From IMG/VR virus record IMGVR_UViG_3300007513_000001, positions 62,001-126,000 of that record: a stretch of DNA of 64,000 nucleotides. One strand, 5' to 3'. The notes below the pieces were generated by a model. The model made no database searches and was not told the DNA's origin. It saw only the letters and a list, made by a program, of their open reading frames with translations. Shown one piece after another: positions 1-14,808 of the stretch. Within the stretch, counting starts at the first letter, position 1; each line of letters starts with the position of its first letter. Position numbers and translations under genes: made by a program.

Positions 1-1
1 A

Positions 2-1384
2 ATTCTGCAAGATCAATACATTAAAGACTATTCTGCAGCCAAGGGCTTGATGGAGACAATTAAGTCATCTGCAAATTATTCATGCCGTCACCTCCGCGGG
101 AGTTCGTGTGCAGAAGGTTTGAGAGCACTTAAGGCTGCTGATAAAAAATCTCAGTTTTTTAAAACTTGTGCTTTCCGGTGCACATATAAAAAAGCAAAAG
201 AAAAATTTGTTGGAAGCAGTTATGGAATTACTAATTTTTCTTATTTTTTAGCAGAGACTCAATATGTCGGAAAAATTAAACCGCACCAACTCTTAGTTGT
301 CGATGAAGCTCATAATTCAGAATTAGAATTAAGTAAATTTATTGAAATTGGAATCTCTAAAAGATTTTGTGTTAGAGTGCTTAAGCTTACAATGCCAGAT
401 TTTTCTAGCCAAAAACAAGCTATAAACTGGGTAGAGCAAGTTTATGAACCAAGGTTGTCTTCGCACGTAAAGCATATCGAAAATATGCTAGAGAAATATG
501 TTGGATTAAAAGAAAAGATTAAAGAATTTGCTAATATAGCTAATAAATTTGAGATGTTAGATAAACATGCATGCAAACTTAGAAGATTTCTATCTCACTA
601 CTCTGAAGAAAATTGGGTCTTTAATTACGAAAAAGAGGGAGACAGCGCAAGACTAGAGTTTAAACCTGTGGATATATCTAAGTTTGCTCAAGAATATCTT
701 CTCAAATATGGCAAACAAGTTTTGATGATGTCTGCAACAATATTAAATAAAGATGCATTCTGCGAGCTGATGGGGATAAAAAAAGAAGAAGCTGCTTTTA
801 TTTCTATTCCATCTCCATTCCCAAAAGACAATCGCCCTATTATAGTCAGCCCTATTGGAAAAATGAGTTCGTCTTCTATTGATCAAACTCTGCCAAAGTT
901 GGCCATTGCTATCAAAGAAATTATTGATAACCATGAAGATGAAAAGGGGATTATTCATTGCCACTCTTACAAAATAGCAAATTATTTGAAAAAAAATATT
1001 AAATCTAACAGGTTTTTAATTCACGATTCTTCAAATAGGGATATGATTCTTGAAAAACATATGAAATCAAAAAAACCAACCATACTACTAAGCCCATCTA
1101 TGACGGAAGGAGTAGATTTAAAAGGCGATATGAGTAGATTCCAAATTTTGTGTAAGGTGCCTTATCCGTATCTTGGAGATAAGCTAATCAAAAAGAAAAT
1201 GAATAAATGGAATTGGTGGTATCCAATGCAAACAGCTAAGACTATAGTTCAATCTGTTGGTAGAAGCATAAGAAATAAAGAAGATTATGCCGCAACTTAT
1301 ATCTTAGATTCGGATTGGAATTATTTTTATAAAAGAAATTCTGCATACTTACCTACAGATTTTTCTTCTTGCATTCTTCAATAG
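2..1384 (+). CDS. DinG/Rad3-family SF2 helicase, 5'-truncated by the window edge
   Basis: The frame is open from base 2 (ILQDQY, motif Ia-like), so the track start at 47 is not the true start. Motifs: LLVVDEAH (II), MSAT (III), SMTEGVDLKG (V), QSVGRSIR (VI), plus a Cys cluster that could bind Fe-S. Confidence 0.9.
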   Translation: MLQDQYIKDYSAAKGLMETIKSSANYSCRHLRGSSCAEGLRALKAADKKSQFFKTCAFRCTYKKAKEKFVGSSYGITNFSYFLAETQYVGKIKPHQLLVVDEAHNSELELSKFIEIGISKRFCVRVLKLTMPDFSSQKQAINWVEQVYEPRLSSHVKHIENMLEKYVGLKEKIKEFANIANKFEMLDKHACKLRRFLSHYSEENWVFNYEKEGDSARLEFKPVDISKFAQEYLLKYGKQVLMMSATILNKDAFCELMGIKKEEAAFISIPSPFPKDNRPIIVSPIGKMSSSSIDQTLPKLAIAIKEIIDNHEDEKGIIHCHSYKIANYLKKNIKSNRFLIHDSSNRDMILEKHMKSKKPTILLSPSMTEGVDLKGDMSRFQILCKVPYPYLGDKLIKKKMNKWNWWYPMQTAKTIVQSVGRSIRNKEDYAATYILDSDWNYFYKRNSAYLPTDFSSCILQ

Positions 1385-1393
1385 GACATAACG

Positions 1394-1930
1394 ATGCCAG
1401 GCTTAGTTTACAAAAATATACACGAGCTCAAGAAAGAGTTAGATAACTGGGGATATTCTATCTTTACAATATCTGGTGGTTTTGATCCTATTCACGTGGG
1501 TCATATTAGATATATAACTTCCGCAGCAGAGGCTGCTCAAGTAGGATCTCCCGATACTGGTTTCTGGAACCCGGGGGTGTTGGTGGTTATTGTTAATAGC
1601 GATGGTTTTCTAAAGAGAAAGAAAGGATATTCGTTTATGCCCTTAGAAGAAAGAATGGAAATAATCTCCTCTATTGAAGGCGTCGATTTTGTTACTTGCT
1701 GGGATGATGGCACTCAAACAGTAATAGGCGCATTAGAAATACTGAAACCTCAATTCTTTTTAAAGGGCGGCGACAGATGCGATCCAGAGAGTGTACCAGA
1801 ATTCTCGACATGCGATAAAATTGGTTGCGAAGTGCTTTTTGACATAGGGGGAAAAGAAAAGGTTCAAAGCTCTTCAGAGCTGGTGCGGCAATATGAAAAC
1901 ATTAGACTCAAAAAAGATAAAAAGAAATAA
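1394..1930 (+). CDS. Cytidylyltransferase-like nucleotidyltransferase (TagD/RibL/RfaE-II superfamily)
   Basis: SGGFDPIHVGH (HxGH) motif, KGGDR, and a C-terminal SSSEL(V) motif. Confidence 0.85.
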   Translation: MPGLVYKNIHELKKELDNWGYSIFTISGGFDPIHVGHIRYITSAAEAAQVGSPDTGFWNPGVLVVIVNSDGFLKRKKGYSFMPLEERMEIISSIEGVDFVTCWDDGTQTVIGALEILKPQFFLKGGDRCDPESVPEFSTCDKIGCEVLFDIGGKEKVQSSSELVRQYENIRLKKDKKK

Positions 1931-2507
1931 AAAAACGACTGATATTCTAAGAGAATATATTAGATTCATACAAGAAGATGTAGGAGGAATCGACTCTGTT
2001 AATATTCTTTCACAATACGCGCATAGAGACCAAAAAAGAAGAACTGGAGAACCCTATTTTTTACACCCGCAAGAAGTTTCTAACATAGTAAAAAAATATT
2101 ACCCGGGAAATAAAGTAGCTTATTATTCTGCGCTTCTCCATGATTCAATGGAGGATGGATTAGATTTAGGCAACTTTGAAGATGAAGATGAGCTAATAGC
2201 TTTTATACTAGACGCGATATCGGATGATAAGGTTTCTAGTAGAGTAATAGAAGTGGTAAGCTTACTCACTAAAAGAAAAAATGCCCCCTATGATTTTTAT
2301 ATACGTGGTATAATGAATGATCCAGACGCAGTAATTGTTAAGCTCGCTGATATGCTCCACAACCTTTCTGATAACCCGTCGCCCAGGCAAATAGTCAAAT
2401 ATGGAAAAGCTGTTAGGGATATATCAGATTCTTCTCAGGGCCCACCGACGTTTGTTAATAGGTCGCACTGGAATGCTCTACTAAAATTAACGCAAACAGA
2501 AAAGTAG
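1893..2507 (+). CDS. Stand-alone RelA/SpoT-type HD hydrolase (small alarmone hydrolase, Mesh1-like)
   Basis: AHRDQKRRTGEPYFLHP, LLHDSMED and VKLADMLHN motifs; no synthetase domain; exact start uncertain. Confidence 0.85.
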   Translation: MKTLDSKKIKRNKKTTDILREYIRFIQEDVGGIDSVNILSQYAHRDQKRRTGEPYFLHPQEVSNIVKKYYPGNKVAYYSALLHDSMEDGLDLGNFEDEDELIAFILDAISDDKVSSRVIEVVSLLTKRKNAPYDFYIRGIMNDPDAVIVKLADMLHNLSDNPSPRQIVKYGKAVRDISDSSQGPPTFVNRSHWNALLKLTQTEK

Positions 2508-2555
2508 AATGCTAATTTAGTTTATTTCTAATCTAAAATTAACATAATTAGAAAT

Positions 2556-3737
2556 ATGTCGATATTCAAGCACCATAAATCCTCTGGCGATAGATCAGCT
2601 TCAGATCGCTCTCGTCATAAAGGAAAAATAGAGAAAGCTATAAAAGAAGGCATCCACCACATTGTTGCTGAAGAAAGCATCATTGGCCAGGATGGAAAAA
2701 AGAAATTTAAGATTCCTGTTAGAGGGATAAAAGAATATCGCTTTGTATATGGAAAAAACTCTAGTAAAAAAGTTGGAGCTGCGCCTGGAAAAAATATTAG
2801 AAAAGGTCAAACAATAGGAAAAAAAGATTCCAGCGACCAAGGACCCGGGCAGGGAAATAAGCCAGGAAATGAAAAGGGCGAAGAATACTATGAGGTAGAA
2901 ATAACTCTAGAAGAATTAGCTTCTTACTTGTTTGATAATCTTGAGTTGCCAGAGCTTGAAAAGAAGCAAATGAAGAAAATTCTTTCTGAAAAACCAAAGC
3001 GACATGGATATCGAAACAAGGGGATCCGTCCGCGGCTAGACAAAAAAGAAACAGTAAAAAGAATGCTTCGAAGAAAAAATATGTCTAAAAGGCATAAAGA
3101 AATCGAAGAAGAAGATGATTTTTCTTTTAACCAAAGAGACTTAAGATATAAACACATTAAAAAGAAGTTTAATCAGCATTCAAATGCAGTGATATTCTTT
3201 GTAATGGATATTTCAGGGTCGATGACGGAAAACAAAAAATATTTAGCTAGAAGCTTTTTCTTTCTTTTATATCATTTTGTAAGATCTAAATACGAAAATA
3301 CAGAATTAGTTTTTATTGCCCACGATTCGCAAGCTTATGAAGTGAGCGAAGACCAATTTTTTAAAAGAGGGTCTTCTGGAGGAACTATAGTTTCTTCTTC
3401 TACAGAGATGGTTTTAGACATTGTCAGCAAAAGGTACCACCCAAGCAGCTGGAATATCTACTTGTTCCAGTGTAGCGACGGAGACAACTGGCCGTCAGAC
3501 AATGAGAAATTAGCTGACCATATAATAAAATTAATACCGATGGTTCAGCTTTACGGATATTGCGAAATAGTGCCATCTGACGACAGGCTTAGATGGGCTG
3601 ATGATAGCAAAGGATTGGGGGCTATGGTGTTTAAGCCGTTGAGTGGTTTTAATCTAAAAGTTGCAGATATTAGTTCTCCCGAAGATATTTGGCCTGCTTT
3701 TAAATCATTTTTCGGAGGTAGGAGTTTAGATGTCTGA
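2556..3737 (+). CDS. yeaH: YeaH/YhbH (DUF444) family VWA-domain protein
   Basis: N-terminal DRSASDRSRH, Gly-rich linker, MIDAS-like MDISGSM...GGT...SDGDN. Confidence 0.9.
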   Translation: MSIFKHHKSSGDRSASDRSRHKGKIEKAIKEGIHHIVAEESIIGQDGKKKFKIPVRGIKEYRFVYGKNSSKKVGAAPGKNIRKGQTIGKKDSSDQGPGQGNKPGNEKGEEYYEVEITLEELASYLFDNLELPELEKKQMKKILSEKPKRHGYRNKGIRPRLDKKETVKRMLRRKNMSKRHKEIEEEDDFSFNQRDLRYKHIKKKFNQHSNAVIFFVMDISGSMTENKKYLARSFFFLLYHFVRSKYENTELVFIAHDSQAYEVSEDQFFKRGSSGGTIVSSSTEMVLDIVSKRYHPSSWNIYLFQCSDGDNWPSDNEKLADHIIKLIPMVQLYGYCEIVPSDDRLRWADDSKGLGAMVFKPLSGFNLKVADISSPEDIWPAFKSFFGGRSLDV

Positions 3738-5043
3738 TTGGAGTCTTAAAGATTTAGAATTCTGGGATGAAAAGATATGCAAAATTGCAGAAGAGTGTAA
3801 TTTAGACTGGTATCCTATCACTTATGAAACATGCGACTACTATGAGATGATAGGGCACATGTCATATCACGGCATGCCATCGCATTATAACCATTGGTCT
3901 TTTGGCAAAAGTTTCGAAAGAACTCATCAAATGTATAATCTTGGTATGGAAGGCTTGCCCTATGAATTGATTATTAATTCAAATCCTTCTATATCTTATC
4001 TCATGAGAGAAAACCCTCTATATTTACAAATTCTTATAATGGCACACTGCGTAGGGCATTCAGATTTCTTTAAAAATAATAGAACTTTTGAGCTTACACA
4101 TGCAGACACTATTGTTTCTTCTTTAAGGAACGCCAAAAAGAGAATTCAGTCTTATATTGAAGATCCCAGCATTGGAATAGAAGAAGTAGAAAAAATAATA
4201 GATGCGGCTCACACCCTGCAGTTTCAAACCTACAGATATCCAAAAGAATATATTTCCAATAAAAAGAAAAAAGAAGAGCTAAAACTTTATTTAAAATCTC
4301 AGAGCGAAGCAGGAAAAGATGTAGATTTTTCTGTTTTAGACAACACACCTCTCGAACCCGAATATGATATATTGGGCTTTTTATTAGAATATTCTGACTC
4401 TCTAGAAGAGTGGGAAAGAGATATATTAGAAATAGTTAAAGTAGAATCTAATTACTTTTTACCACAAATTAAAACTAAAATTATGAATGAGGGATGGGCT
4501 TCTTATTGGCATTATACTATTCTTCATAAATTAGATTTACCGCAAAAATATCATTTGCCATTTCTAAAAAGCCACAACCAAGTTATTAAGCCTCATATAG
4601 GTGCTATTAATCCTTATCATTTGGGGTTTGAAATATTTAGAAGAATTGAAGAACGCGATGGAATTGAAGAATGTTTTTTAGCTAGAGAAATTCATCACGA
4701 TGAATCTTTCATTCGCCAATATCTAACTGAGGAAGATTGTCGAGATTTAAATTTATTTTCTTATGCTAATTTTGGGGATAAAATTAAAATAACTGATGTT
4801 TCTGATAAAGAAAGTTGGAAAATAGTGAGAGATGATTTAATTAAAAGAACGGGAACCAACAACATACCAGTAATTTATGTTGATTCAATAGACTTAGGGA
4901 ACATGTTAGTTTTACATCACGAACACGACGGAAGAGATCTAGAAATAGACCATGCAGAAAAAGTAGTGGATCATATAACTACGCTCTGGAAAAATCCAGT
5001 TAAATTATTAACAATCATTGAAGATGAACCATTTGAAATTTAG
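3730..5043 (+). CDS. spoVR: SpoVR/YcgB family protein
   Basis: GMPSHYNHWSFGK, YELIINSNP, MAHCVGHSDFFKNN, KIMNEGWASYWH; 8-nt overlap with yeaH. Confidence 0.92.
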   Translation: MSDWSLKDLEFWDEKICKIAEECNLDWYPITYETCDYYEMIGHMSYHGMPSHYNHWSFGKSFERTHQMYNLGMEGLPYELIINSNPSISYLMRENPLYLQILIMAHCVGHSDFFKNNRTFELTHADTIVSSLRNAKKRIQSYIEDPSIGIEEVEKIIDAAHTLQFQTYRYPKEYISNKKKKEELKLYLKSQSEAGKDVDFSVLDNTPLEPEYDILGFLLEYSDSLEEWERDILEIVKVESNYFLPQIKTKIMNEGWASYWHYTILHKLDLPQKYHLPFLKSHNQVIKPHIGAINPYHLGFEIFRRIEERDGIEECFLAREIHHDESFIRQYLTEEDCRDLNLFSYANFGDKIKITDVSDKESWKIVRDDLIKRTGTNNIPVIYVDSIDLGNMLVLHHEHDGRDLEIDHAEKVVDHITTLWKNPVKLLTIIEDEPFEI

Positions 5044-5051
5044 AGGGGAAC

Positions 5052-6992
5052 ATGCCAAAAAAGAAAACAGAAGACTTTCTTAAAATAATAGAAAATCAGA
5101 GAAATACAAAAAAAGAAGAACGTTTCAATGGAACTTTTTTAGAATATCTAGAAGAAGTTCAGAACAATCCCTCTATAGCGGATCACGCTCATAAAAAACT
5201 TTATGACACTATTGCTAATTTTGGATTCGAGGTTTTATCTGATGAAGATCCTCGAAAACGAAAAATATTTGATGGTGAAAATATAAAGATTTATGATTAT
5301 TTCAAGAGCGAATTTTTTGGTATGGAGCAAGTTCTTTCTAGATTAATGAGATTTTTAAAAGCTGCTTCTCTCAAGGGAGAAGAAAGTAGACAAGTATTGC
5401 TCTTGATGGGTCCAGTTGGAGCTGGTAAATCTGCTCTAGTTGAACATATAAAAAGAGCTATGGAGCATGCTCCAAATTATTACCACTTAGCGGGAGATCC
5501 TCAAAGAGGAGAACCGCTTCAACTAGTGCCAAGAGCGCTTAGGGAACAATTTGAAAGCATGATCGGTGTAAAAATCGAAGGCGACATCAGTCCCGTGGCA
5601 AGATATAAGCTCTTAGAAGAACATGGCGGTAAGTACGAACAGTTCCCCATAGTACAATCATCGTATTCTCAAAGGGGTCGCCGCGGGATTGCTGTCGTTC
5701 CTCCAATGGATGCTAACAGTCAAGACGTTTCGGTCTTAATAGGCTCAGAAGATATATCTAAGCTAGACAAATATTCAGAAGACGACCCCCGGATTTTATC
5801 GCTCAACGGTGCATTCAACGTTGGAAATAGAGGCATTGTTGAACTTGTTGAAGTCTTTAAGAATGAGATCGAATTTCTTCACACTATTATTACAGCGACC
5901 CAGGAAAAAAGAGTTCCGTCTCCAGGGAAGCATGACATGGTGTTTTTTGACGGTGTTATTTTAGCACACTGTAACGAAGCAGAGTGGAATAGATTCAGAT
6001 CAGAGCATACTAACGAAGCTATTCTAGATAGAATTGTTAAAATTAATGTACCGTATGTTTTAGAGCTGAATAAAGAAATAAAGATTTACGAGAAAATATT
6101 GGGAAGATCAGACTTTAAAGCACATATAGCGCCCCACACTATTAAGATAGCTTCTATGTTTTCAATCATGTCGAGATTAAAAAGTTCTCAAAAATGTGAT
6201 CTTCTTACGAAGATGAAAATTTACAATGGCGAAGAAGTAATTGAAAAAGGAAGAGTCAAAAAGATTGATATTAGAGACTTAAGAGAAGAATCTAGAGGGG
6301 AGGGTATGAAAGGAATTTCTACTCGATTCATCATGAAATGCATTGATGCAGCGCTTACCGATTCTGATTCTGGGTACATTACTCCTATTTCCGTTATGGA
6401 ATCAATTAAAAAGCAAGTTAACGAACAGCTAATTGACGAAGATTTTAGAGAAAGATGTCAAGAAATTATTGGCGGAATTGTTAGAGAAGAATACCTTAAA
6501 ATTCTTGAAAACGAAATAGCCAAAGCGTTCGTCACCGCCTATGAAGAACAAGCTCAAGCTTTATTTGATACGTATCTTGATAATGCTGAAGCTCATACAA
6601 CTCATGCTAGGATCAAGGACAAGATCACTAAAGAAGAACGCGAGCCAGATGAGAAGTATATGAGAGCGATCGAAGAGCAAATTGGGATTACTGGATCTTC
6701 AAGAGACGGATTTCGATCTGACGTAACCGCTTATATGTTTGCTAAAATGAGAAGAGGCGAAAAAGTCAACTATACTTCTTATGAGCCACTAAAAGAAGCA
6801 ATTGAAAGTTATTTAGTTGGATCTGTTAAAGATATGGCGCGAATCGTTACTAAGTCAAAAACTCGTGATGACGACCAAAAGAAAAAATATAGTGACATGG
6901 TTCAAACTATGGTCGATGAATATGGATATTCCCCAGATTCTGCCGAAGAAGTTTTAACTTACGCCAGTAATAATCTTTGGCGAGATAGTTAA
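5052..6992 (+). CDS. prkA: PrkA/YeaG family AAA+ ATPase (annotated Ser kinase)
   Basis: FFGME, Walker A GPVGAGKS, RGIVELVEVFK, NEAILDRI, VPYVL, GMKGISTRF; 646 aa is typical of the family. Confidence 0.92.
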   Translation: MPKKKTEDFLKIIENQRNTKKEERFNGTFLEYLEEVQNNPSIADHAHKKLYDTIANFGFEVLSDEDPRKRKIFDGENIKIYDYFKSEFFGMEQVLSRLMRFLKAASLKGEESRQVLLLMGPVGAGKSALVEHIKRAMEHAPNYYHLAGDPQRGEPLQLVPRALREQFESMIGVKIEGDISPVARYKLLEEHGGKYEQFPIVQSSYSQRGRRGIAVVPPMDANSQDVSVLIGSEDISKLDKYSEDDPRILSLNGAFNVGNRGIVELVEVFKNEIEFLHTIITATQEKRVPSPGKHDMVFFDGVILAHCNEAEWNRFRSEHTNEAILDRIVKINVPYVLELNKEIKIYEKILGRSDFKAHIAPHTIKIASMFSIMSRLKSSQKCDLLTKMKIYNGEEVIEKGRVKKIDIRDLREESRGEGMKGISTRFIMKCIDAALTDSDSGYITPISVMESIKKQVNEQLIDEDFRERCQEIIGGIVREEYLKILENEIAKAFVTAYEEQAQALFDTYLDNAEAHTTHARIKDKITKEEREPDEKYMRAIEEQIGITGSSRDGFRSDVTAYMFAKMRRGEKVNYTSYEPLKEAIESYLVGSVKDMARIVTKSKTRDDDQKKKYSDMVQTMVDEYGYSPDSAEEVLTYASNNLWRDS

Positions 6993-7024
6993 TGTACAAT
7001 TAGCTTCTATTTATTATTTTTTTA

Positions 7025-7312
7025 ATGGAGGCTTATATGAATAATAAAGTAGTTTTTGGCATGCCAGAAGTTCTAGTGGCTGGATCTTTTTTGCTTTTAG
7101 TTTCTGGCTTAACTTGGCAGGGGTGGTCTATTTTTGTGCTCGGTATGTTTGGAGCATTTATGAGATTTAGCTTAGAAATACAGAAAGCAAAAGTAGCTGA
7201 AGAAAAACAAAAAGAAGTAGTTGATAAAGTTGAAAACTTTGGAAAAACAGTTGCAGAACTAGCTGCATTTGGTCAGGTGTTTGGAAGCAAGAATGACGGT
7301 AAACTTCACTAA
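7025..7312 (+). CDS. Small membrane protein
   Basis: Two hydrophobic segments followed by a charged C-terminal half. Confidence 0.6.
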   Translation: MEAYMNNKVVFGMPEVLVAGSFLLLVSGLTWQGWSIFVLGMFGAFMRFSLEIQKAKVAEEKQKEVVDKVENFGKTVAELAAFGQVFGSKNDGKLH

Positions 7313-8645
7313 TTTTTATAGAGTTGAAGACACTGAATCTTTTTTAATTAAATCTAAACCTACGATCAAGAATTTTGCTAGAAATTTTAAAAAGTTGTCT
7401 AGTGGAAAAATAGAATTTTTTCTTAAAGATACGGTTGTTAAAGCTTCTTGGATAGACGGACTTAGATTAATATTAGAGTGCTTCGAAGAAGATAACAAGA
7501 TCATTAGAGATATTGTAGCAGAAGGTTTTATCTCAGTAGAAAAAATGCATCCGGGATCGGGATATTTTTATTTAATCGCTTTTCTACAGGGGCTAATGTA
7601 TAATTCTAACGATTGCTATTATGAAGAAATCCACTCTATTTCTAAACTTGCGAAAAGAGCAGATCTTTCTGAGCTTAAAGCTAGCATCAACTTAAATGAA
7701 GACGAATTCATAAAAAGCTTCGTAGATTTTATTATCAATCAAGCTGGTTTTAATTGCTCTTTTTCTTTAAAAGAAACACCGCAGTTTAATTCTAGGTTTA
7801 TTGTTTCTTCTTCGTATGATTTTCCAATAGCAGCACCCGTTGAATTTCTTCACGGAATCAATGTTTCAAATATTTCTATTTTTGATTCTAAAGCTATTGT
7901 TTACGATGGAGTAATAGAAAGTGTGGGAGAAATTCATCATGTTTTAAGCTATTTTTCTGAAAATAAATTAGATTTAATATTAGTTGCAAGAGGGTTTTCA
8001 GATGATGTAATCAATACTTTGGCTGTAAATTATAATAGAAAATCTCTAAGAGTCATTCCTGCGAGACTACTTTTTTCACTAGAGAGCATAAACTCTCTTA
8101 AAGATTTTTCCGTTGCAGCAGACGCAGAATTTGTAGATTCAACAAGCGGAAAATCCATATCTAGTTTAGATTTTAAAGAATTAAGATCTATTCACCACAT
8201 AGAAATCGACCACTTAAAATGTGCCATGCGAAACTCTAGAACTTCTAGTCGCGTTTTATCTTTAGTCTTTCAAATAAACAAAAAAATAGAAGCGACTGAT
8301 ATAGAAGAAAAAAAGGAAATTCTTCGAAAAAGAGTGGCTTCATTAAATGGGAGAAAAACAACAATTTATTTAGGGCAGCATTTAAGAAACGCAAAAGGAA
8401 TAACTAGAGACAGAATACTTTCTACTATCGGTATTTTAAACACAATAAGCCGGCATGGAATACTTAATTTAAAAGAAATAGAAGGAGAGAATTTGATTAA
8501 TCTTCGGAGTATTGTTAACTTTCTGACGGATTCTAATATGGAATTAGTCCCTGCAGCGTGTTTTATTCATGGCACCCTGAATGGTTTTAAGACAGCAAAC
8601 CAAGTAAAAAATGGAAGTTATATGCTTTTGCTGGATAATCAATGA
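7269..8645 (+). CDS. Divergent GroEL/Cpn60-like protein (apical domain recognisable, ATP motif degenerate); likely start at ATG 7293
   Basis: [17 protein letters not shown]...[19 protein letters not shown] resembles GroEL ILLADKKIS...[40 protein letters not shown] resembles ERVAKLAGGVAVIKVG; no GDGTTT. Confidence 0.7.
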   Translation: [458 protein letters not shown]

Positions 8646-9124
8646 TAACCCCTCGAGACTCAAAGTGGTTTTGTGGAGGTGGAAAACCGGCTGCTTTTTG
8701 TCAAATATTAGATGAAATTATAAATTCAGACCCTTCAGCAGAAATATATGTTGGAACGGATTCAGATCCCAGTAGAAAAAAAGTTGCTTTCGTAACTGGT
8801 GTTGTAATAAGATATCCGGGCAATGGTGCAAACTATTATTGGTCTCGAAGATATATAGAGTCAAATAAATTTTTTAATTTAGGGCATCGGCTAGAGCTAG
8901 AAGTAGCGGACTCAATTGTAGTTGCAACTGTGCTAAGAAAAGAAACTGGAAGAGATAAAATAATAATTCATGCGGACTGTAGTAGCGATCCTAGAAATGC
9001 TAGTTTTGAATTCCTAAACAGGATCACTAGTTATTCTAGAGCTATGGGTTTCACTACTGTGGCTAAGCCTGATAGTTGGGCTGCCAGCTCTGTAGCTGAC
9101 AAGCACGCAAAATCAATTAGCTGA
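8642..9124 (+). CDS. Ribonuclease H-like YkuK (DUF458) family protein
   Basis: IYVGTDS, RLELEV, IHAD, KPDSWAASSVADKH acidic motif pattern. Confidence 0.8.
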   Translation: MITPRDSKWFCGGGKPAAFCQILDEIINSDPSAEIYVGTDSDPSRKKVAFVTGVVIRYPGNGANYYWSRRYIESNKFFNLGHRLELEVADSIVVATVLRKETGRDKIIIHADCSSDPRNASFEFLNRITSYSRAMGFTTVAKPDSWAASSVADKHAKSIS

Positions 9125-9171
9125 TTTTACTTAGAGTCAAAATTGATTAGTTTGATCTATGGAGGTTTGTC

Positions 9172-9426
9172 ATGCCTAGAAGTAAGAAAACAACAATAAA
9201 ATCAACACCACAGCCGCCCCAAATAAAAGAAGGCGTTGTTGGAAGAATGACTAGAGACGTCATCGAGCTCCACGGTCAGTATTTAAAAGAAGAGCTAGTA
9301 GGTAATCCGGAAGCGTATAGTTTAAATCGCGACCAATTACAGAAAGTGTGCGAGTTAGTAGATGCTATTACTGTAAGAACTCAAGATAAAGCTTTAAGAC
9401 AAGTAGTCTCTATTTTTAAATCTTAG
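9172..9426 (+). CDS. Hypothetical protein
   Basis: GGAGG Shine-Dalgarno 5 nt before the ATG; tiles with its neighbours. Confidence 0.65.
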   Translation: MPRSKKTTIKSTPQPPQIKEGVVGRMTRDVIELHGQYLKEELVGNPEAYSLNRDQLQKVCELVDAITVRTQDKALRQVVSIFKS

Positions 9427-9435
9427 CGCAAAATT

Positions 9436-9897
9436 ATGCACGGAATAAGGCATCTAATAAATTGTCATTGCATTTTACCGCAATTTAAAAAATCTACAAA
9501 CCCCCTATTTCATAAATTTGTCGTCTTTTCAATAATAGACGACGACGATAATGTTGTACCGTCATATGCACAATGTAATAATTGTTCTATAGTTCATAAA
9601 ATTATAGACTTATGCAATTCTGAAATTGTAAAAGGTAAAGAGCAACTAGCAAGTTTGCCAACCATTACAGATATTAAGCTAGAATTCCCAGATTCCTTGT
9701 CTGAATTGTTAGTTTCTTATAAATCGGATATAACCATATGGCAACATGCTCAGTTTATTCTGAGGCATCAGAGGTGGGGAGAAAAAATAATAATTCAAAG
9801 AGAAGAAGATGAATCAAGTGTTCAGGGTAAAATACTAACTTTTGTTTCGCCTATTCAATTTAGAATGGAAAGTTTTCAAGAGGATAACGATGTCTAA
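9436..9897 (+). CDS. Hypothetical protein with a putative Zn-binding CxC...CxxC...C set
   Basis: HLINCHCILPQF, AQCNNC, DLC. Confidence 0.65.
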   Translation: MHGIRHLINCHCILPQFKKSTNPLFHKFVVFSIIDDDDNVVPSYAQCNNCSIVHKIIDLCNSEIVKGKEQLASLPTITDIKLEFPDSLSELLVSYKSDITIWQHAQFILRHQRWGEKIIIQREEDESSVQGKILTFVSPIQFRMESFQEDNDV

Positions 9898-11833: not shown

Positions 11834-13006
11834 GTGGCTTCTAGAACTAATAACCTGTTTGGAAGAGATATAAATAAGAAAAAAAAGAAAAAAAAGGATA
11901 CAATTATGACAACCGATCCCAAAGATCCAAATATTGAAGATTCTAACGATGATTACATCAATACACCAGATGCTGGGGACGATTTCGATTTTGTCATGGC
12001 TTATGATGATGATCCCGCAGAAGCCGATGAGCGACTTCTTCAAGATAACTTAGCGCGCAGCGCTATTTCTTGCGGTTTTATTGGAGTCGGTGGAGGCGGT
12101 GGAAAGCTGGCTAAAGCTTTTTTAGATTTAGGGTTTAATAAAACTCTTTTAGTCAACACCACTAAAAAAGATCAGCCTGGTGGATTAGACGAGAATAATT
12201 TTGTTTTAGTTCCGGGCGCTGACGGCGTGGGGAAAGATATAGATCTTGGTAAAAAGGTTCTTCAAGAAAACAGTGCATTTGTAGAAGACGCAGTACGTAC
12301 GAGATTGGGGCAGTTAGACTGGTTGTTTGTTTGTGCGGGCGGTGGTGGTGGCACGGGGAGTGCTTCTTACGAACTGCATGATTCTTTAACTCGATATCTA
12401 TCTTCGATCGAAGCCTCAGGAAAAGTGGTTTATATTGTTTCGAAACCAACGGCGCAAGAAATGCTTAATCCAACAATTTCAAAAAACTATAAATCTCTAG
12501 CAAGTGATATATCTGATACTCCTCACATTATTATTGATAATGAAAAGCAGCTCCAGCTCTTAAGAGGTAAAGTTGGAATGATGAACATGTTCCCTGCTGC
12601 AAATAAAAACTTTGCTAAATTAATAGCTCAAGTTCTTAAATTAGCAGACGAGCACACCGAAATACAAACGTTTGATTCTAAAGATTTAGAAAAATGTTTA
12701 AGTGCTAATGGAAGAATAGTAGTGGGTAGCACTGTAGTGCGAGACGTTAATAGAAATGATTTAGGATCTTTGGTCTACCAAGGGTGCTTAAGATCTTCTC
12801 CATGTCCCACTCCATCTGGTAACGCAAAAACAGGAACTCTTCTTTTGGTTGTAGATAATAATATGGCTTCGGACCCGGACGTAAGTCGTAGACTTGAATC
12901 TGCTTTTTCTTACGTCGGTGGTAGAGCTTCTACTTTATTCTCCGGTGTATATGTAAAAGAAGGAATTCCTGGACTTATAGCTATCACACTTCTTGGCGGA
13001 TTATAA
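11834..13006 (+). CDS. Tubulin/FtsZ-family GTPase (TubZ/PhuZ/CetZ-like); likely start at ATG 11906
   Basis: GFIGVGGGGGK (T1 loop), AGGGGGTGS signature, NEKQ, FDSKDL (T7-like); acidic N-terminal extension; ends at the core with no C-terminal tail. Confidence 0.9.
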   Translation: MASRTNNLFGRDINKKKKKKKDTIMTTDPKDPNIEDSNDDYINTPDAGDDFDFVMAYDDDPAEADERLLQDNLARSAISCGFIGVGGGGGKLAKAFLDLGFNKTLLVNTTKKDQPGGLDENNFVLVPGADGVGKDIDLGKKVLQENSAFVEDAVRTRLGQLDWLFVCAGGGGGTGSASYELHDSLTRYLSSIEASGKVVYIVSKPTAQEMLNPTISKNYKSLASDISDTPHIIIDNEKQLQLLRGKVGMMNMFPAANKNFAKLIAQVLKLADEHTEIQTFDSKDLEKCLSANGRIVVGSTVVRDVNRNDLGSLVYQGCLRSSPCPTPSGNAKTGTLLLVVDNNMASDPDVSRRLESAFSYVGGRASTLFSGVYVKEGIPGLIAITLLGGL

Positions 13007-13518: not shown

Positions 13519-14808
13519 ATGAACAATAGAAAAATGTTAGTAGTAGACACAAGCGTTCTACTTTATGATATGAAGTCTATTCATTCTTTTCCTGGTAATG
13601 ATGTTGTTATACCATTGATTGTGCTGGATGAATTAGATAGATTTAAAGAAAAGCCCGGGCTCTTGGGCGAATCTGCTAGATACATTAATCGATTCTTAGA
13701 TAACCTCAGAGAACACGGAAAGTTAGATCAAGGTATTACCATACCAGAGTTCGACCAGACCATCAGAGTAGCTCTGAAGACCCCCAGTTATGACATTCTG
13801 AACGATTGGGATCAAGACAAGGGAGATAACAGGATAATTTCTGTTGCTCTTGGTCTTAAGAACGAAAATCCAGATTTTCCAGTAAAGGTTATAACCAAAG
13901 ATATTAACCTTAGAGTAAAATGCGATGCGCTAGGAATACAGGCGGAAGATTATTTCGCAGATCATATCGATATTGAATCTGAGGGAGAGTATACTGGATG
14001 GAGAGAGATAGCTCTTATGCCAGAACAAATAGATAGATTTTATTCTTCTAATTTTGAAGCTCCCAAAGATTTAGCTTTAATAGAAAATGAATTTGTTGTT
14101 GCAAAATCTGGAAGTAGTTCTTTTATAGCCCAGCATAGAAATGGAAAGTTTAATAAATTAAATTGCAAAATTGAATCTATTTCTAAAATAGAACCAAAAA
14201 ATAAAGAGCAAAAATTTGCTATAGAGTCTTTATTACACGATGATATTCCACTAGTTACTTTAACTGGCTTAGCGGGTTCTGGAAAAACGTTTTTAACTTT
14301 AATGGCAGCACTAGAAGCTAAGAATCATGGGACTTACTCTAGAATTGTATTTACAAGGTCTATTCAAAGTGTCGGTAAAGATATGGGTTATTTGCCAGGA
14401 GACATTAAAGAAAAAATGGCTCCTTGGTTAGCTCCAATAGTAGATAACTTTAGACATGTATTTAAAGATGTGACTTATTTTGACATGATGATAGAAAGAG
14501 GCGAAATAGAAATAGCTCCGCTTTCTTACATTCGCGGAAGAACTTTTAACGATTGTTTCGTGATTGTCGATGAAGCTCAAAATGCTACTATTCATGAATT
14601 AAAAACTATCATAACTAGAATTGGCACAAATTCTAAAGTCGTTCTTCTTGGAGATACAGATCAAATAGACACTCCTTATATTGGAAAGAATTCTAACGGC
14701 TTAAGCATTGTAATCAGTAAATTTAAGAATAGCCCGCTACACTCGCATGTTCATTTAGCTAGAGGACAGAGGTCAGAACTTGCATCTGCAGCATCAAAAA
14801 TTCTGTGA
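13519..14808 (+). CDS. phoH: PIN-PhoH fusion (PhoH2/YlaK-like)
   Basis: PIN motifs VVDTSVLL, DNRII, TKDINLRVK; PhoH motifs GLAGSGKT, YIRGRTF, IVDEAQN, GDTDQID. Confidence 0.92.
   Translation: MNNRKMLVVDTSVLLYDMKSIHSFPGNDVVIPLIVLDELDRFKEKPGLLGESARYINRFLDNLREHGKLDQGITIPEFDQTIRVALKTPSYDILNDWDQDKGDNRIISVALGLKNENPDFPVKVITKDINLRVKCDALGIQAEDYFADHIDIESEGEYTGWREIALMPEQIDRFYSSNFEAPKDLALIENEFVVAKSGSSSFIAQHRNGKFNKLNCKIESISKIEPKNKEQKFAIESLLHDDIPLVTLTGLAGSGKTFLTLMAALEAKNHGTYSRIVFTRSIQSVGKDMGYLPGDIKEKMAPWLAPIVDNFRHVFKDVTYFDMMIERGEIEIAPLSYIRGRTFNDCFVIVDEAQNATIHELKTIITRIGTNSKVVLLGDTDQIDTPYIGKNSNGLSIVISKFKNSPLHSHVHLARGQRSELASAASKIL

Follow-up and report, generated by a model that had tools for sequence, protein, structure and literature searches.

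A study of 2020 described stand-alone small alarmone hydrolases (SAHs) from numerous phages and prophages; those of the Salmonella phages PVP-SE1 (PbcSpo) and SSU5 (PaSpo) neutralised all five tested toxic small alarmone synthetases (toxSAS) in E. coli, the proposed use for the phage being the bypass of alarmone-based abortive infection (Jimmy et al., PMC7229694). A separate line of work concerns starvation: in E. coli, YeaG/SpdA is needed for the starvation-induced, largely non-specific degradation of cytoplasmic protein (2026; PMC13684143), and a Bacillus PrkA homologue is an ATP-dependent protease (PMC9512850). The locus analysed here joins relatives of both kinds of protein. In a stretch of 64,000 nucleotides (the window), which comprises bases 62,001-126,000 of the 293,409-bp IMG/VR virus record IMGVR_UViG_3300007513_000001, an open reading frame (ORF) with an ATG start (positions 1893-2507, + strand) encodes a protein of 204 aa, P0001, directly ahead of the genes for homologues of YeaH, SpoVR and PrkA/YeaG (hereafter, the trio). 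Judging from its sequence, P0001 is very probably an active phage SAH of the RelA/SpoT homologue (RSH) type, and it most likely removes host alarmones during infection. Phage SAHs being familiar already, P0001 adds a member to them and, possibly, a new subfamily; the trio itself is the more unusual object of this neighbourhood.

The assignment of P0001 to the RSH hydrolases is carried by profiles, conserved residues and fold alike. Against the RSH-specific HD family of Pfam, HD_4 (PF13328), it scores 34.1 bits (cut-off 27.2) over residues 39-161, and its Pfam domain matches are limited to HD_4/HD; the NCBIfam model TIGR00691 (spoT_relA) is matched with E 1.3e-13 at positions 5-120 of 687 only, that is, in the hydrolase part. 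The catalytic core, approximately residues 39-160, contains the motifs H44-R45..K48-R49-R50, H58-P59, H83-D84..E87-D88 and K150..D153..H156-N157, and the basic patch H44-R45..K48-R50, H58, H83-D84, E87-D88 and D153..N157 align with Bacillus subtilis Rel. The metal-binding H...HD...D set and the ED pair four residues past the HD are all present (H58, H83-D84, E87-D88 and D153), and we take the metal-binding and catalytic roles of these residues to be those known from the published structures of Rel and Mesh1. Throughout 40 homologues of 37-82% identity, A43, H44, R49, H58, H83, D84, E87, D88, K150, D153 and N157 are invariant; since the catalytic residues never change, the active site is under purifying selection. 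The RelA_SpoT synthetase domain (PF04607) is absent from the ORF as well as from the whole genome, so that the initial annotation, which had read the gene as carrying the full Rel/SpoT HD motifs with no synthetase, holds in both respects. Because NUDIX, MazG and RSH synthetase domains are likewise missing elsewhere in the 293-kb genome, the SAH is its only recognisable alarmone-type hydrolase.

The fold leads to the same place. An AlphaFold2 model of P0001 built on the homologue alignment is all-helical, with a predicted local distance difference test score of 91.8, and the core is flanked by an N-terminal helix peculiar to the family and by a helical extension at the C-terminus, in which P162, Q166, K169, Y170, P185 and W193 are conserved. 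In a Foldseek search of PDB, the top 43 matches are RSH hydrolases, and everything down to E 0.06 is Mesh1, RelH, other SAHs, Aph1, Rel or SpoT, with other HD-superfamily folds (Ddi2, YpgQ) first appearing at E > 0.09 and TM < 0.4. The first sixteen matches in a PDB sequence search are the N-terminal regions of Rel/SpoT, Mesh1 and bacterial SAHs. Thus, the stand-alone Rel/SpoT HD hydrolase that had been proposed from the bare sequence is now backed by sequence, profile, fold and tree, and none of the profiles, the Foldseek matches or the phylogeny groups it with non-RSH HD proteins.

Phylogenetic placement, which the initial annotation had called for, puts the window SAH family on the side of PVP-SE1 gp220, apart from the HD domains of long RSH proteins. 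In a maximum-likelihood tree of 28 HD domains (five of them long-RSH), the family forms a clade of its own with 82/82 support, and a 91/90 branch has it on one side with PVP-SE1, phiM12, Javan180 and Weasels2, parting it from the five long-RSH domains and from another SAH group. With respect to the PbcSpo grouping, the family falls on the same 91/90 side as PVP-SE1 gp220 but in a separate clade, in a tree with long branches and one named reference. Among tested SAHs, PVP-SE1 gp220 is nearest to P0001 and resembles it closely in build: it, too, is a single-domain phage HD_4 protein without a synthetase, with 35% identity across the core at residues 43-157 (E 8e-14 in the pairwise comparison; 98% probability with hhalign), and both have the H..HD..ED..D..N motifs and the LLTK...VKLAD..HN stretch. 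However, gp220, at 169 aa, is devoid of the N-terminal helix and the conserved C-terminal extension of the window family, and its neighbour in the enterobacterial phage is thymidylate kinase, whereas P0001 adjoins the PrkA module. More broadly, tblastn recovers relatives of P0001 in 189 phage records, every one of them below 36% identity.

The cellular relatives fall into two kinds. The hydrolase domains of long RSH proteins (B. subtilis Rel, 8acu; T. thermophilus Rel, 6s2t; SpoT, 7qpr) are the best PDB sequence matches (E 1e-9 to 1e-6) and have the same fold, but these proteins also possess synthetase and regulatory C-terminal domains, both lacking in P0001. Mesh1 (3nr1, 5vxa), C. glutamicum RelH (7qoc), P. 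aeruginosa SAH (6yvc) and Leptospira SAH (7qoe) share with P0001 the size class and the all-helical HD fold and are the top Foldseek matches (TM 0.56-0.62 by query, 0.59-0.71 by target), yet they are only 18-25% identical to it and are cellular, not viral. Mesh1 prefers NADPH. The main substrate of the phage enzyme could similarly be some other nucleotide phosphorylated at the 3' or 2' position, in the way of metazoan Mesh1 with NADPH and 3'-phosphoadenosine 5'-phosphosulfate (PAPS) or of promiscuous bacterial SAHs, which would assign it to nucleotide or cofactor metabolism instead of alarmone signalling. The best structural matches are indeed the complexes of human Mesh1 with NADPH and PAPS, an orphan bacterial SAH is reported to show metabolic promiscuity (PMC9765508), and the window family has its own conserved C-terminal extension. 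Nevertheless, TM-scores are alike for Mesh1, SAHs and Rel (0.55-0.62), so that the fold is not Mesh1-specific; sequence searches favour the long Rel/SpoT hydrolase domains (E 1e-9 to 1e-7), with Mesh1 ranked far lower (E 1e-4 to 1e-3); and every residue of (p)ppGpp hydrolysis is kept. A main substrate other than an alarmone, accordingly, appears quite improbable.

Two further systems invite comparison. The (p)ppApp hydrolase Aph1 (7smg; PMC10083569) has a related HD fold (Foldseek E 7e-4), but membership of P0001 in this group was rejected, the phmmer sequence match being insignificant (E 0.12); at about 149 aa, Aph1 is also the shorter protein. The second is ATfaRel, which serves as SAH antitoxin to the FaRel toxSAS (a type IV toxin-antitoxin). 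It is a stand-alone hydrolase of the PbcSpo type that detoxifies the products of an alarmone synthetase; it adjoins its toxSAS gene, however, whereas the phage genome contains no RelA_SpoT synthetase domain at all. A toxSAS-SAH toxin-antitoxin module was dismissed on this ground and on that of the actual neighbours of the SAH, a cytidylyltransferase-like gene and yeaH. From a habitat perspective, there is a parallel with cyanophages, for which alarmone-lowering genes have reportedly been proposed (MazG, and a spoT-like gene of Synechococcus phage S-CRM01), along with the idea that they "mimic nutrient repletion". These phages likewise carry a putative (p)ppGpp-degrading enzyme in an aquatic, nutrient-poor habitat, but MazG has an unrelated fold and is missing from the present genome, and the S-CRM01 gene is 33% identical to P0001 in a match split across two short annotated ORFs.

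The window SAH family is purely environmental, consisting of 52 clusters, many of which come from Tara and further marine datasets, on contigs of up to 299 kb, and its members lie on large phage contigs wherever long contigs exist. Distant members on three large phage contigs of 64-299 kb (L005, L007 and L010) are 249-332 aa long, with varied C-terminal extensions, and are neighboured by genes for zeta-toxin-like/AAA_33 proteins, GroEL, a sigma factor and peptide deformylase; in the searched part of these contigs, the PrkA trio was not seen near the SAH.

At the locus itself, the genes from the helicase to prkA are all encoded on the + strand and are spaced by -38 to +48 nt. The series opens with the C-terminal part of a DinG/Rad3-like helicase (2-1384, +; PF13307, E 2.6e-21) and continues with a cytidylyltransferase-like gene that encodes a nucleotidyltransferase resembling RfaE domain II (1394-1930, +; PF01467, E 6.8e-10; TIGR02199, E 1.5e-16), the last 38 nt of which overlap the start of the SAH gene, an arrangement consistent with translational coupling. 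Between the end of the SAH stop codon at 2507 and the ATG of yeaH at 2556 lies an AT-rich spacer (2508-2555, +) of exactly the 48 nt reported at the outset. The first trio gene encodes a YeaH/YhbH (DUF444) homologue of 393 aa (2556-3737, +; PF04285, E 6.4e-110; TIGR02877, E 2.5e-116); the second, which overlaps its end by 8 nt, a SpoVR/YcgB homologue (3730-5043, +; PF04293, E 8.9e-123, plus SpoVR_C); and the third, after a gap of 8 nt, a PrkA/YeaG (SpdA) homologue with an AAA+ and a PrkA C-terminal domain (5052-6992, +; PF08298, E 4.6e-137; PF06798, E 7.3e-79; NF011999, E 6e-116). A terminator scan of positions 1-9500 returned no terminator-like site on the + strand, and a promoter or hairpin of the spacer's own was rejected, sigma-70 and terminator scans there being at chance level. 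The spacer contains a 9-bp AT-rich inverted repeat adjoining the start codon, which is not kept in the nearest relative (L002), and a short motif, AGTTTATTTCTAA...ACATAATTA, which is common to both; the shared GTTTAT-like element is not a genome-wide upstream motif. Contigs of two samples other than those marked as the source run across the junction between the SAH gene and yeaH with at most one differing base, so that the adjacency is no assembly artefact.

To what extent this real adjacency reflects a functional tie is best judged from the relatives of the trio. A PrkA protein alignment retrieved 474 IMG/VR viral contigs with a PrkA relative, and the neighbourhoods of the best 80 of the 474 were examined; in these 80, PrkA is 69-79% identical to that of the window, and the order yeaH-spoVR-prkA is kept wherever the contig reaches far enough upstream, an order different from the prkA-yeaH-spoVR that bacteria also use. 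The trio is a core syntenic block of a very abundant clade of marine jumbo phages, and among cellular PrkA proteins the nearest are clostridial, with about 58% identity. In the literature searched, a phage-borne YeaG/SpdA trio appears only in the description of Ralstonia phage RsoM2USA, with none for marine phages. The same block, in the form helicase/cytidylyltransferase/NUDIX/YeaH/SpoVR/PrkA and with a 77% identical PrkA, is also present in a record of 305,838 bp (L098; NHDW01000006.1) filed as the metagenome-assembled genome 'Methylococcaceae bacterium TMED69'; in this case, the genome of a jumbo phage has probably been binned as bacterial.

The SAH follows the trio only in part. The block helicase/cytidylyltransferase/SAH/(NUDIX)/YeaH/SpoVR/PrkA is kept in L002, L004, L009, L049 and L063, with SAH identities of 45-70%. 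Several observations stand against a lasting partnership. The family hidden Markov model (HMM) places an SAH within 10 kb in 8 of the 84 PrkA loci of the clade, just upstream of yeaH in six of them and at distances of 1.8 kb and 6 kb in the other two. Mapping the presence of the SAH on the PrkA tree takes at least 3-5 changes; the sisters nearest to the SAH-bearing phages (L015-17 and L029) are without it, and a 96%-complete relative (G001) has no HD_4 match. Between the window and L002, dN, the nonsynonymous divergence, is 0.227 for the SAH vs 0.064-0.112 for its neighbours (dS, its synonymous counterpart, is saturated for this pair, and dN alone was compared). Beyond the clade, no match to the SAH family lies within 8 kb of prkA in any of 79 bacterial loci, a negative for which the sensitivity is adequate because the family HMM detects the HD domains of long RSH proteins at E 1e-18 to 1e-20. 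The trio of Thermus phage TMA comes without any HD_4; in Ralstonia phage RsoM2USA, 70 kb separate the two; and in LR745206, a 635-kb metagenomic phage, the trio and an SAH are about 11 kb apart on opposite strands. We therefore reject the SAH as a conserved partner of PrkA-YeaH-SpoVR: its adjacency to the trio is a real but single, lineage-specific arrangement, not a recurrent independent linkage. The tie to YeaH-SpoVR-YeaG that the initial annotation had implied is thus weakly supported: what stands is an adjacency that a few relatives retain; what does not is its generality, given that the SAH is an accessory insert in a variable slot, missing in close sisters and in G001, and unlinked to prkA in the bacterial loci and in other trio-bearing phages.

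The slot itself deserves a closer look. Its left border, the helicase gene, is kept in 44 related loci, and between the helicase and yeaH the content varies widely across 79 loci: the cytidylyltransferase may be there or not, and the slot may hold a small unassigned ORF, a NUDIX gene or two, an SAH or other ORFs. At least 44 of the 79 relatives have a NUDIX hydrolase above the Pfam cut-off immediately before yeaH (for instance, at 8509-8994 in L004, 8567-8983 in L009 and 7063-7482 in L015); in the window and in its nearest relative, L002, the SAH stands there without NUDIX, and in some relatives it is accompanied by NUDIX. A sister phage, G003, encodes a different type of HD_4 SAH (L095; G003:C1:20330-20686) about 15 kb upstream of the trio, which groups in the tree with a Methylobacterium SAH, outside the window family. 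The clade thus appears to have gained an alarmone hydrolase on another, separate occasion. With the SAH, NUDIX and the G003 SAH all in this region, a nucleotide hydrolase recurs there. It may well be, even if we would stop short of calling it the likelier case, that the helicase-yeaH interval is simply a hot spot of accessory genes and that an active SAH works independently of the trio. The highly variable content of the slot, the other distances at which the SAH is found in L022, L037 and G003, and the missing linkage in bacteria and in the other trio-bearing phages examined are what this explanation would predict, whereas the recurrence of two kinds of pyrophosphohydrolase, NUDIX and SAH, directly upstream of yeaH, and the tight same-strand spacing without a terminator, are not. 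It concerns only the coupling and is compatible with either of the roles considered below.

Those two roles, suppression of the host's starvation shutdown and evasion of alarmone-based defence, are the ones that the initial annotation had offered. Both have already been proposed for phage SAHs in the literature (PMC7229694), and the computation separates neither from the other. In the version centred on defence, which we regard as a genuine if lesser possibility, the SAH would mainly disarm toxSAS of the host or of a prophage (CapRel, PhRel and FaRel types) once infection has triggered them. It would either break down (pp)pApp or strip the pyrophosphate off the 3' ends of tRNA, and its adjacency to the trio would be incidental. 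The neutralisation of five out of five toxSAS by the SAHs of PVP-SE1 and SSU5, for which the authors proposed this very role (PMC7229694), and the position of P0001 closest to the PVP-SE1 group speak for it. So do the patchy, accessory distribution with its variable slot and its losses in close sisters, the second, unrelated SAH type in G003, and the pace of amino-acid change, which in the SAH is 2-3.5 times that of every one of its five neighbours, as one would expect in an arms race. On the other hand, no toxSAS is known for a host of this phage, and no other recognisable anti-defence gene was identified beside the SAH. Moreover, hydrolysis of (p)ppGpp and neutralisation of toxSAS are compatible: the tested phage SAHs are broad, and hence, an override of starvation and a counter-defence function need not be mutually exclusive.

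The explanation that we tentatively put forward as the best for the locus as a whole is that an active SAH removes host alarmones and is coupled to the trio as a starvation override. Under this scenario, the SAH, a metal-dependent enzyme of the RelA/SpoT superfamily encoded by an accessory gene of a marine jumbo myovirus, would take the 3'-pyrophosphate off host (p)ppGpp during infection and, by analogy with the broad activity of the tested phage SAHs, would probably cleave (p)ppApp as well. With the alarmone pool lowered, a starved host could then go on building ribosomes, translating and replicating during the multiplication of the phage. The bulk proteolysis attributed to YeaG/SpdA suggests, by analogy, a reason for phages to carry the trio: its PrkA, equivalent to YeaG/SpdA, would switch on the useful arm of the starvation response, the release of amino acids from host protein, and the SAH would cancel the harmful arm, the stringent shutdown, so that proteolysis and shutdown become uncoupled. 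For a phage of nutrient-poor seawater, which conceivably gains from host proteolysis and loses from the stringent shutdown that accompanies it, such a division would be advantageous. Here, we infer the substrate, the timing, the co-transcription and the functional coupling with the trio. Because of the gene context, and with modest confidence, we rank the starvation override slightly ahead of counter-defence; the recurrence of NUDIX in the slot of the SAH fits it loosely. A stronger version, in which the trio forms a single 'starvation override' cassette with the SAH or, in most relatives, with the NUDIX hydrolase found in its place, seems to us unlikely. In such a cassette, SpdA-type bulk proteolysis would supply amino acids and energy in the starved marine cell, and the hydrolase would remove the alarmone of growth arrest.

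The genome that harbours this locus is that of a virus, as the label "phage" had anticipated: the IMG/VR record has direct terminal repeats and is rated 100% complete. It has a G+C content of 39% and eight tRNA genes, the + strand holds nearly all ORFs of the window, and a baseplate-wedge homologue points to a myovirus. No isolated phage matches positions 1-8000 of the window by megablast, and no close cultured relative exists; the nearest structural-gene matches, approximately 30% identical, are to Microcystis and Flavobacterium phages, and no host can be inferred from them. Downstream of the trio lie a chaperonin-like ORF (7269-8645, +), for which the match is to the PHROG 'GroEL' family only, with none in Pfam, and an RNaseH-like gene (8642-9124, +), both syntenic in relatives. 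Further along, a 390-aa ORF (11834-13006, +) has a weak match to the Tubulin/FtsZ GTPase domain (24.8 bits, under the cut-off of 33) and may, on this sequence likeness, encode a PhuZ-like phage tubulin, and a starvation-related PhoH-like gene (13519-14808, +) is also near the trio. An island of nucleotide-sugar and polysaccharide genes of some 28 kb (about 21961-50185, +) comprises GT2 and GT4 glycosyltransferases, a PseB-like Polysacc_synt_2 dehydratase, a DegT-family aminotransferase, several epimerases/dehydratases and a Nol-like carbamoyltransferase, and could account for the presence of the cytidylyltransferase-like gene whose end runs into the SAH gene. We also considered, and rejected, an NAD-salvage pair formed by this transferase and the NUDIX hydrolases of the relatives, akin to the NatV-like nicotinamide mononucleotide (NMN) adenylyltransferase/Nudix of KVP40: the genome is without Nampt/NAPRTase, the transferase scores best as RfaE domain II, and the large nucleotide-sugar island lies downstream.

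Phage alarmone hydrolases are among the few known viral routes to the stringent response or to alarmone-based immunity, and P0001, beside a phage YeaG/SpdA module of starvation proteolysis, stands for a possibly distinct, purely environmental subfamily. If the SAH and the trio prove to act separately, the SAH would still be a good candidate for an anti-toxSAS factor in an uncultured phage group. If the two act together, the exploitation of starved oligotrophic hosts by large phages would gain a testable model, and, should the cassette be true, viruses would have a hitherto undescribed way of infecting starved hosts, and the two arms of the starvation response would be split in a natural system.

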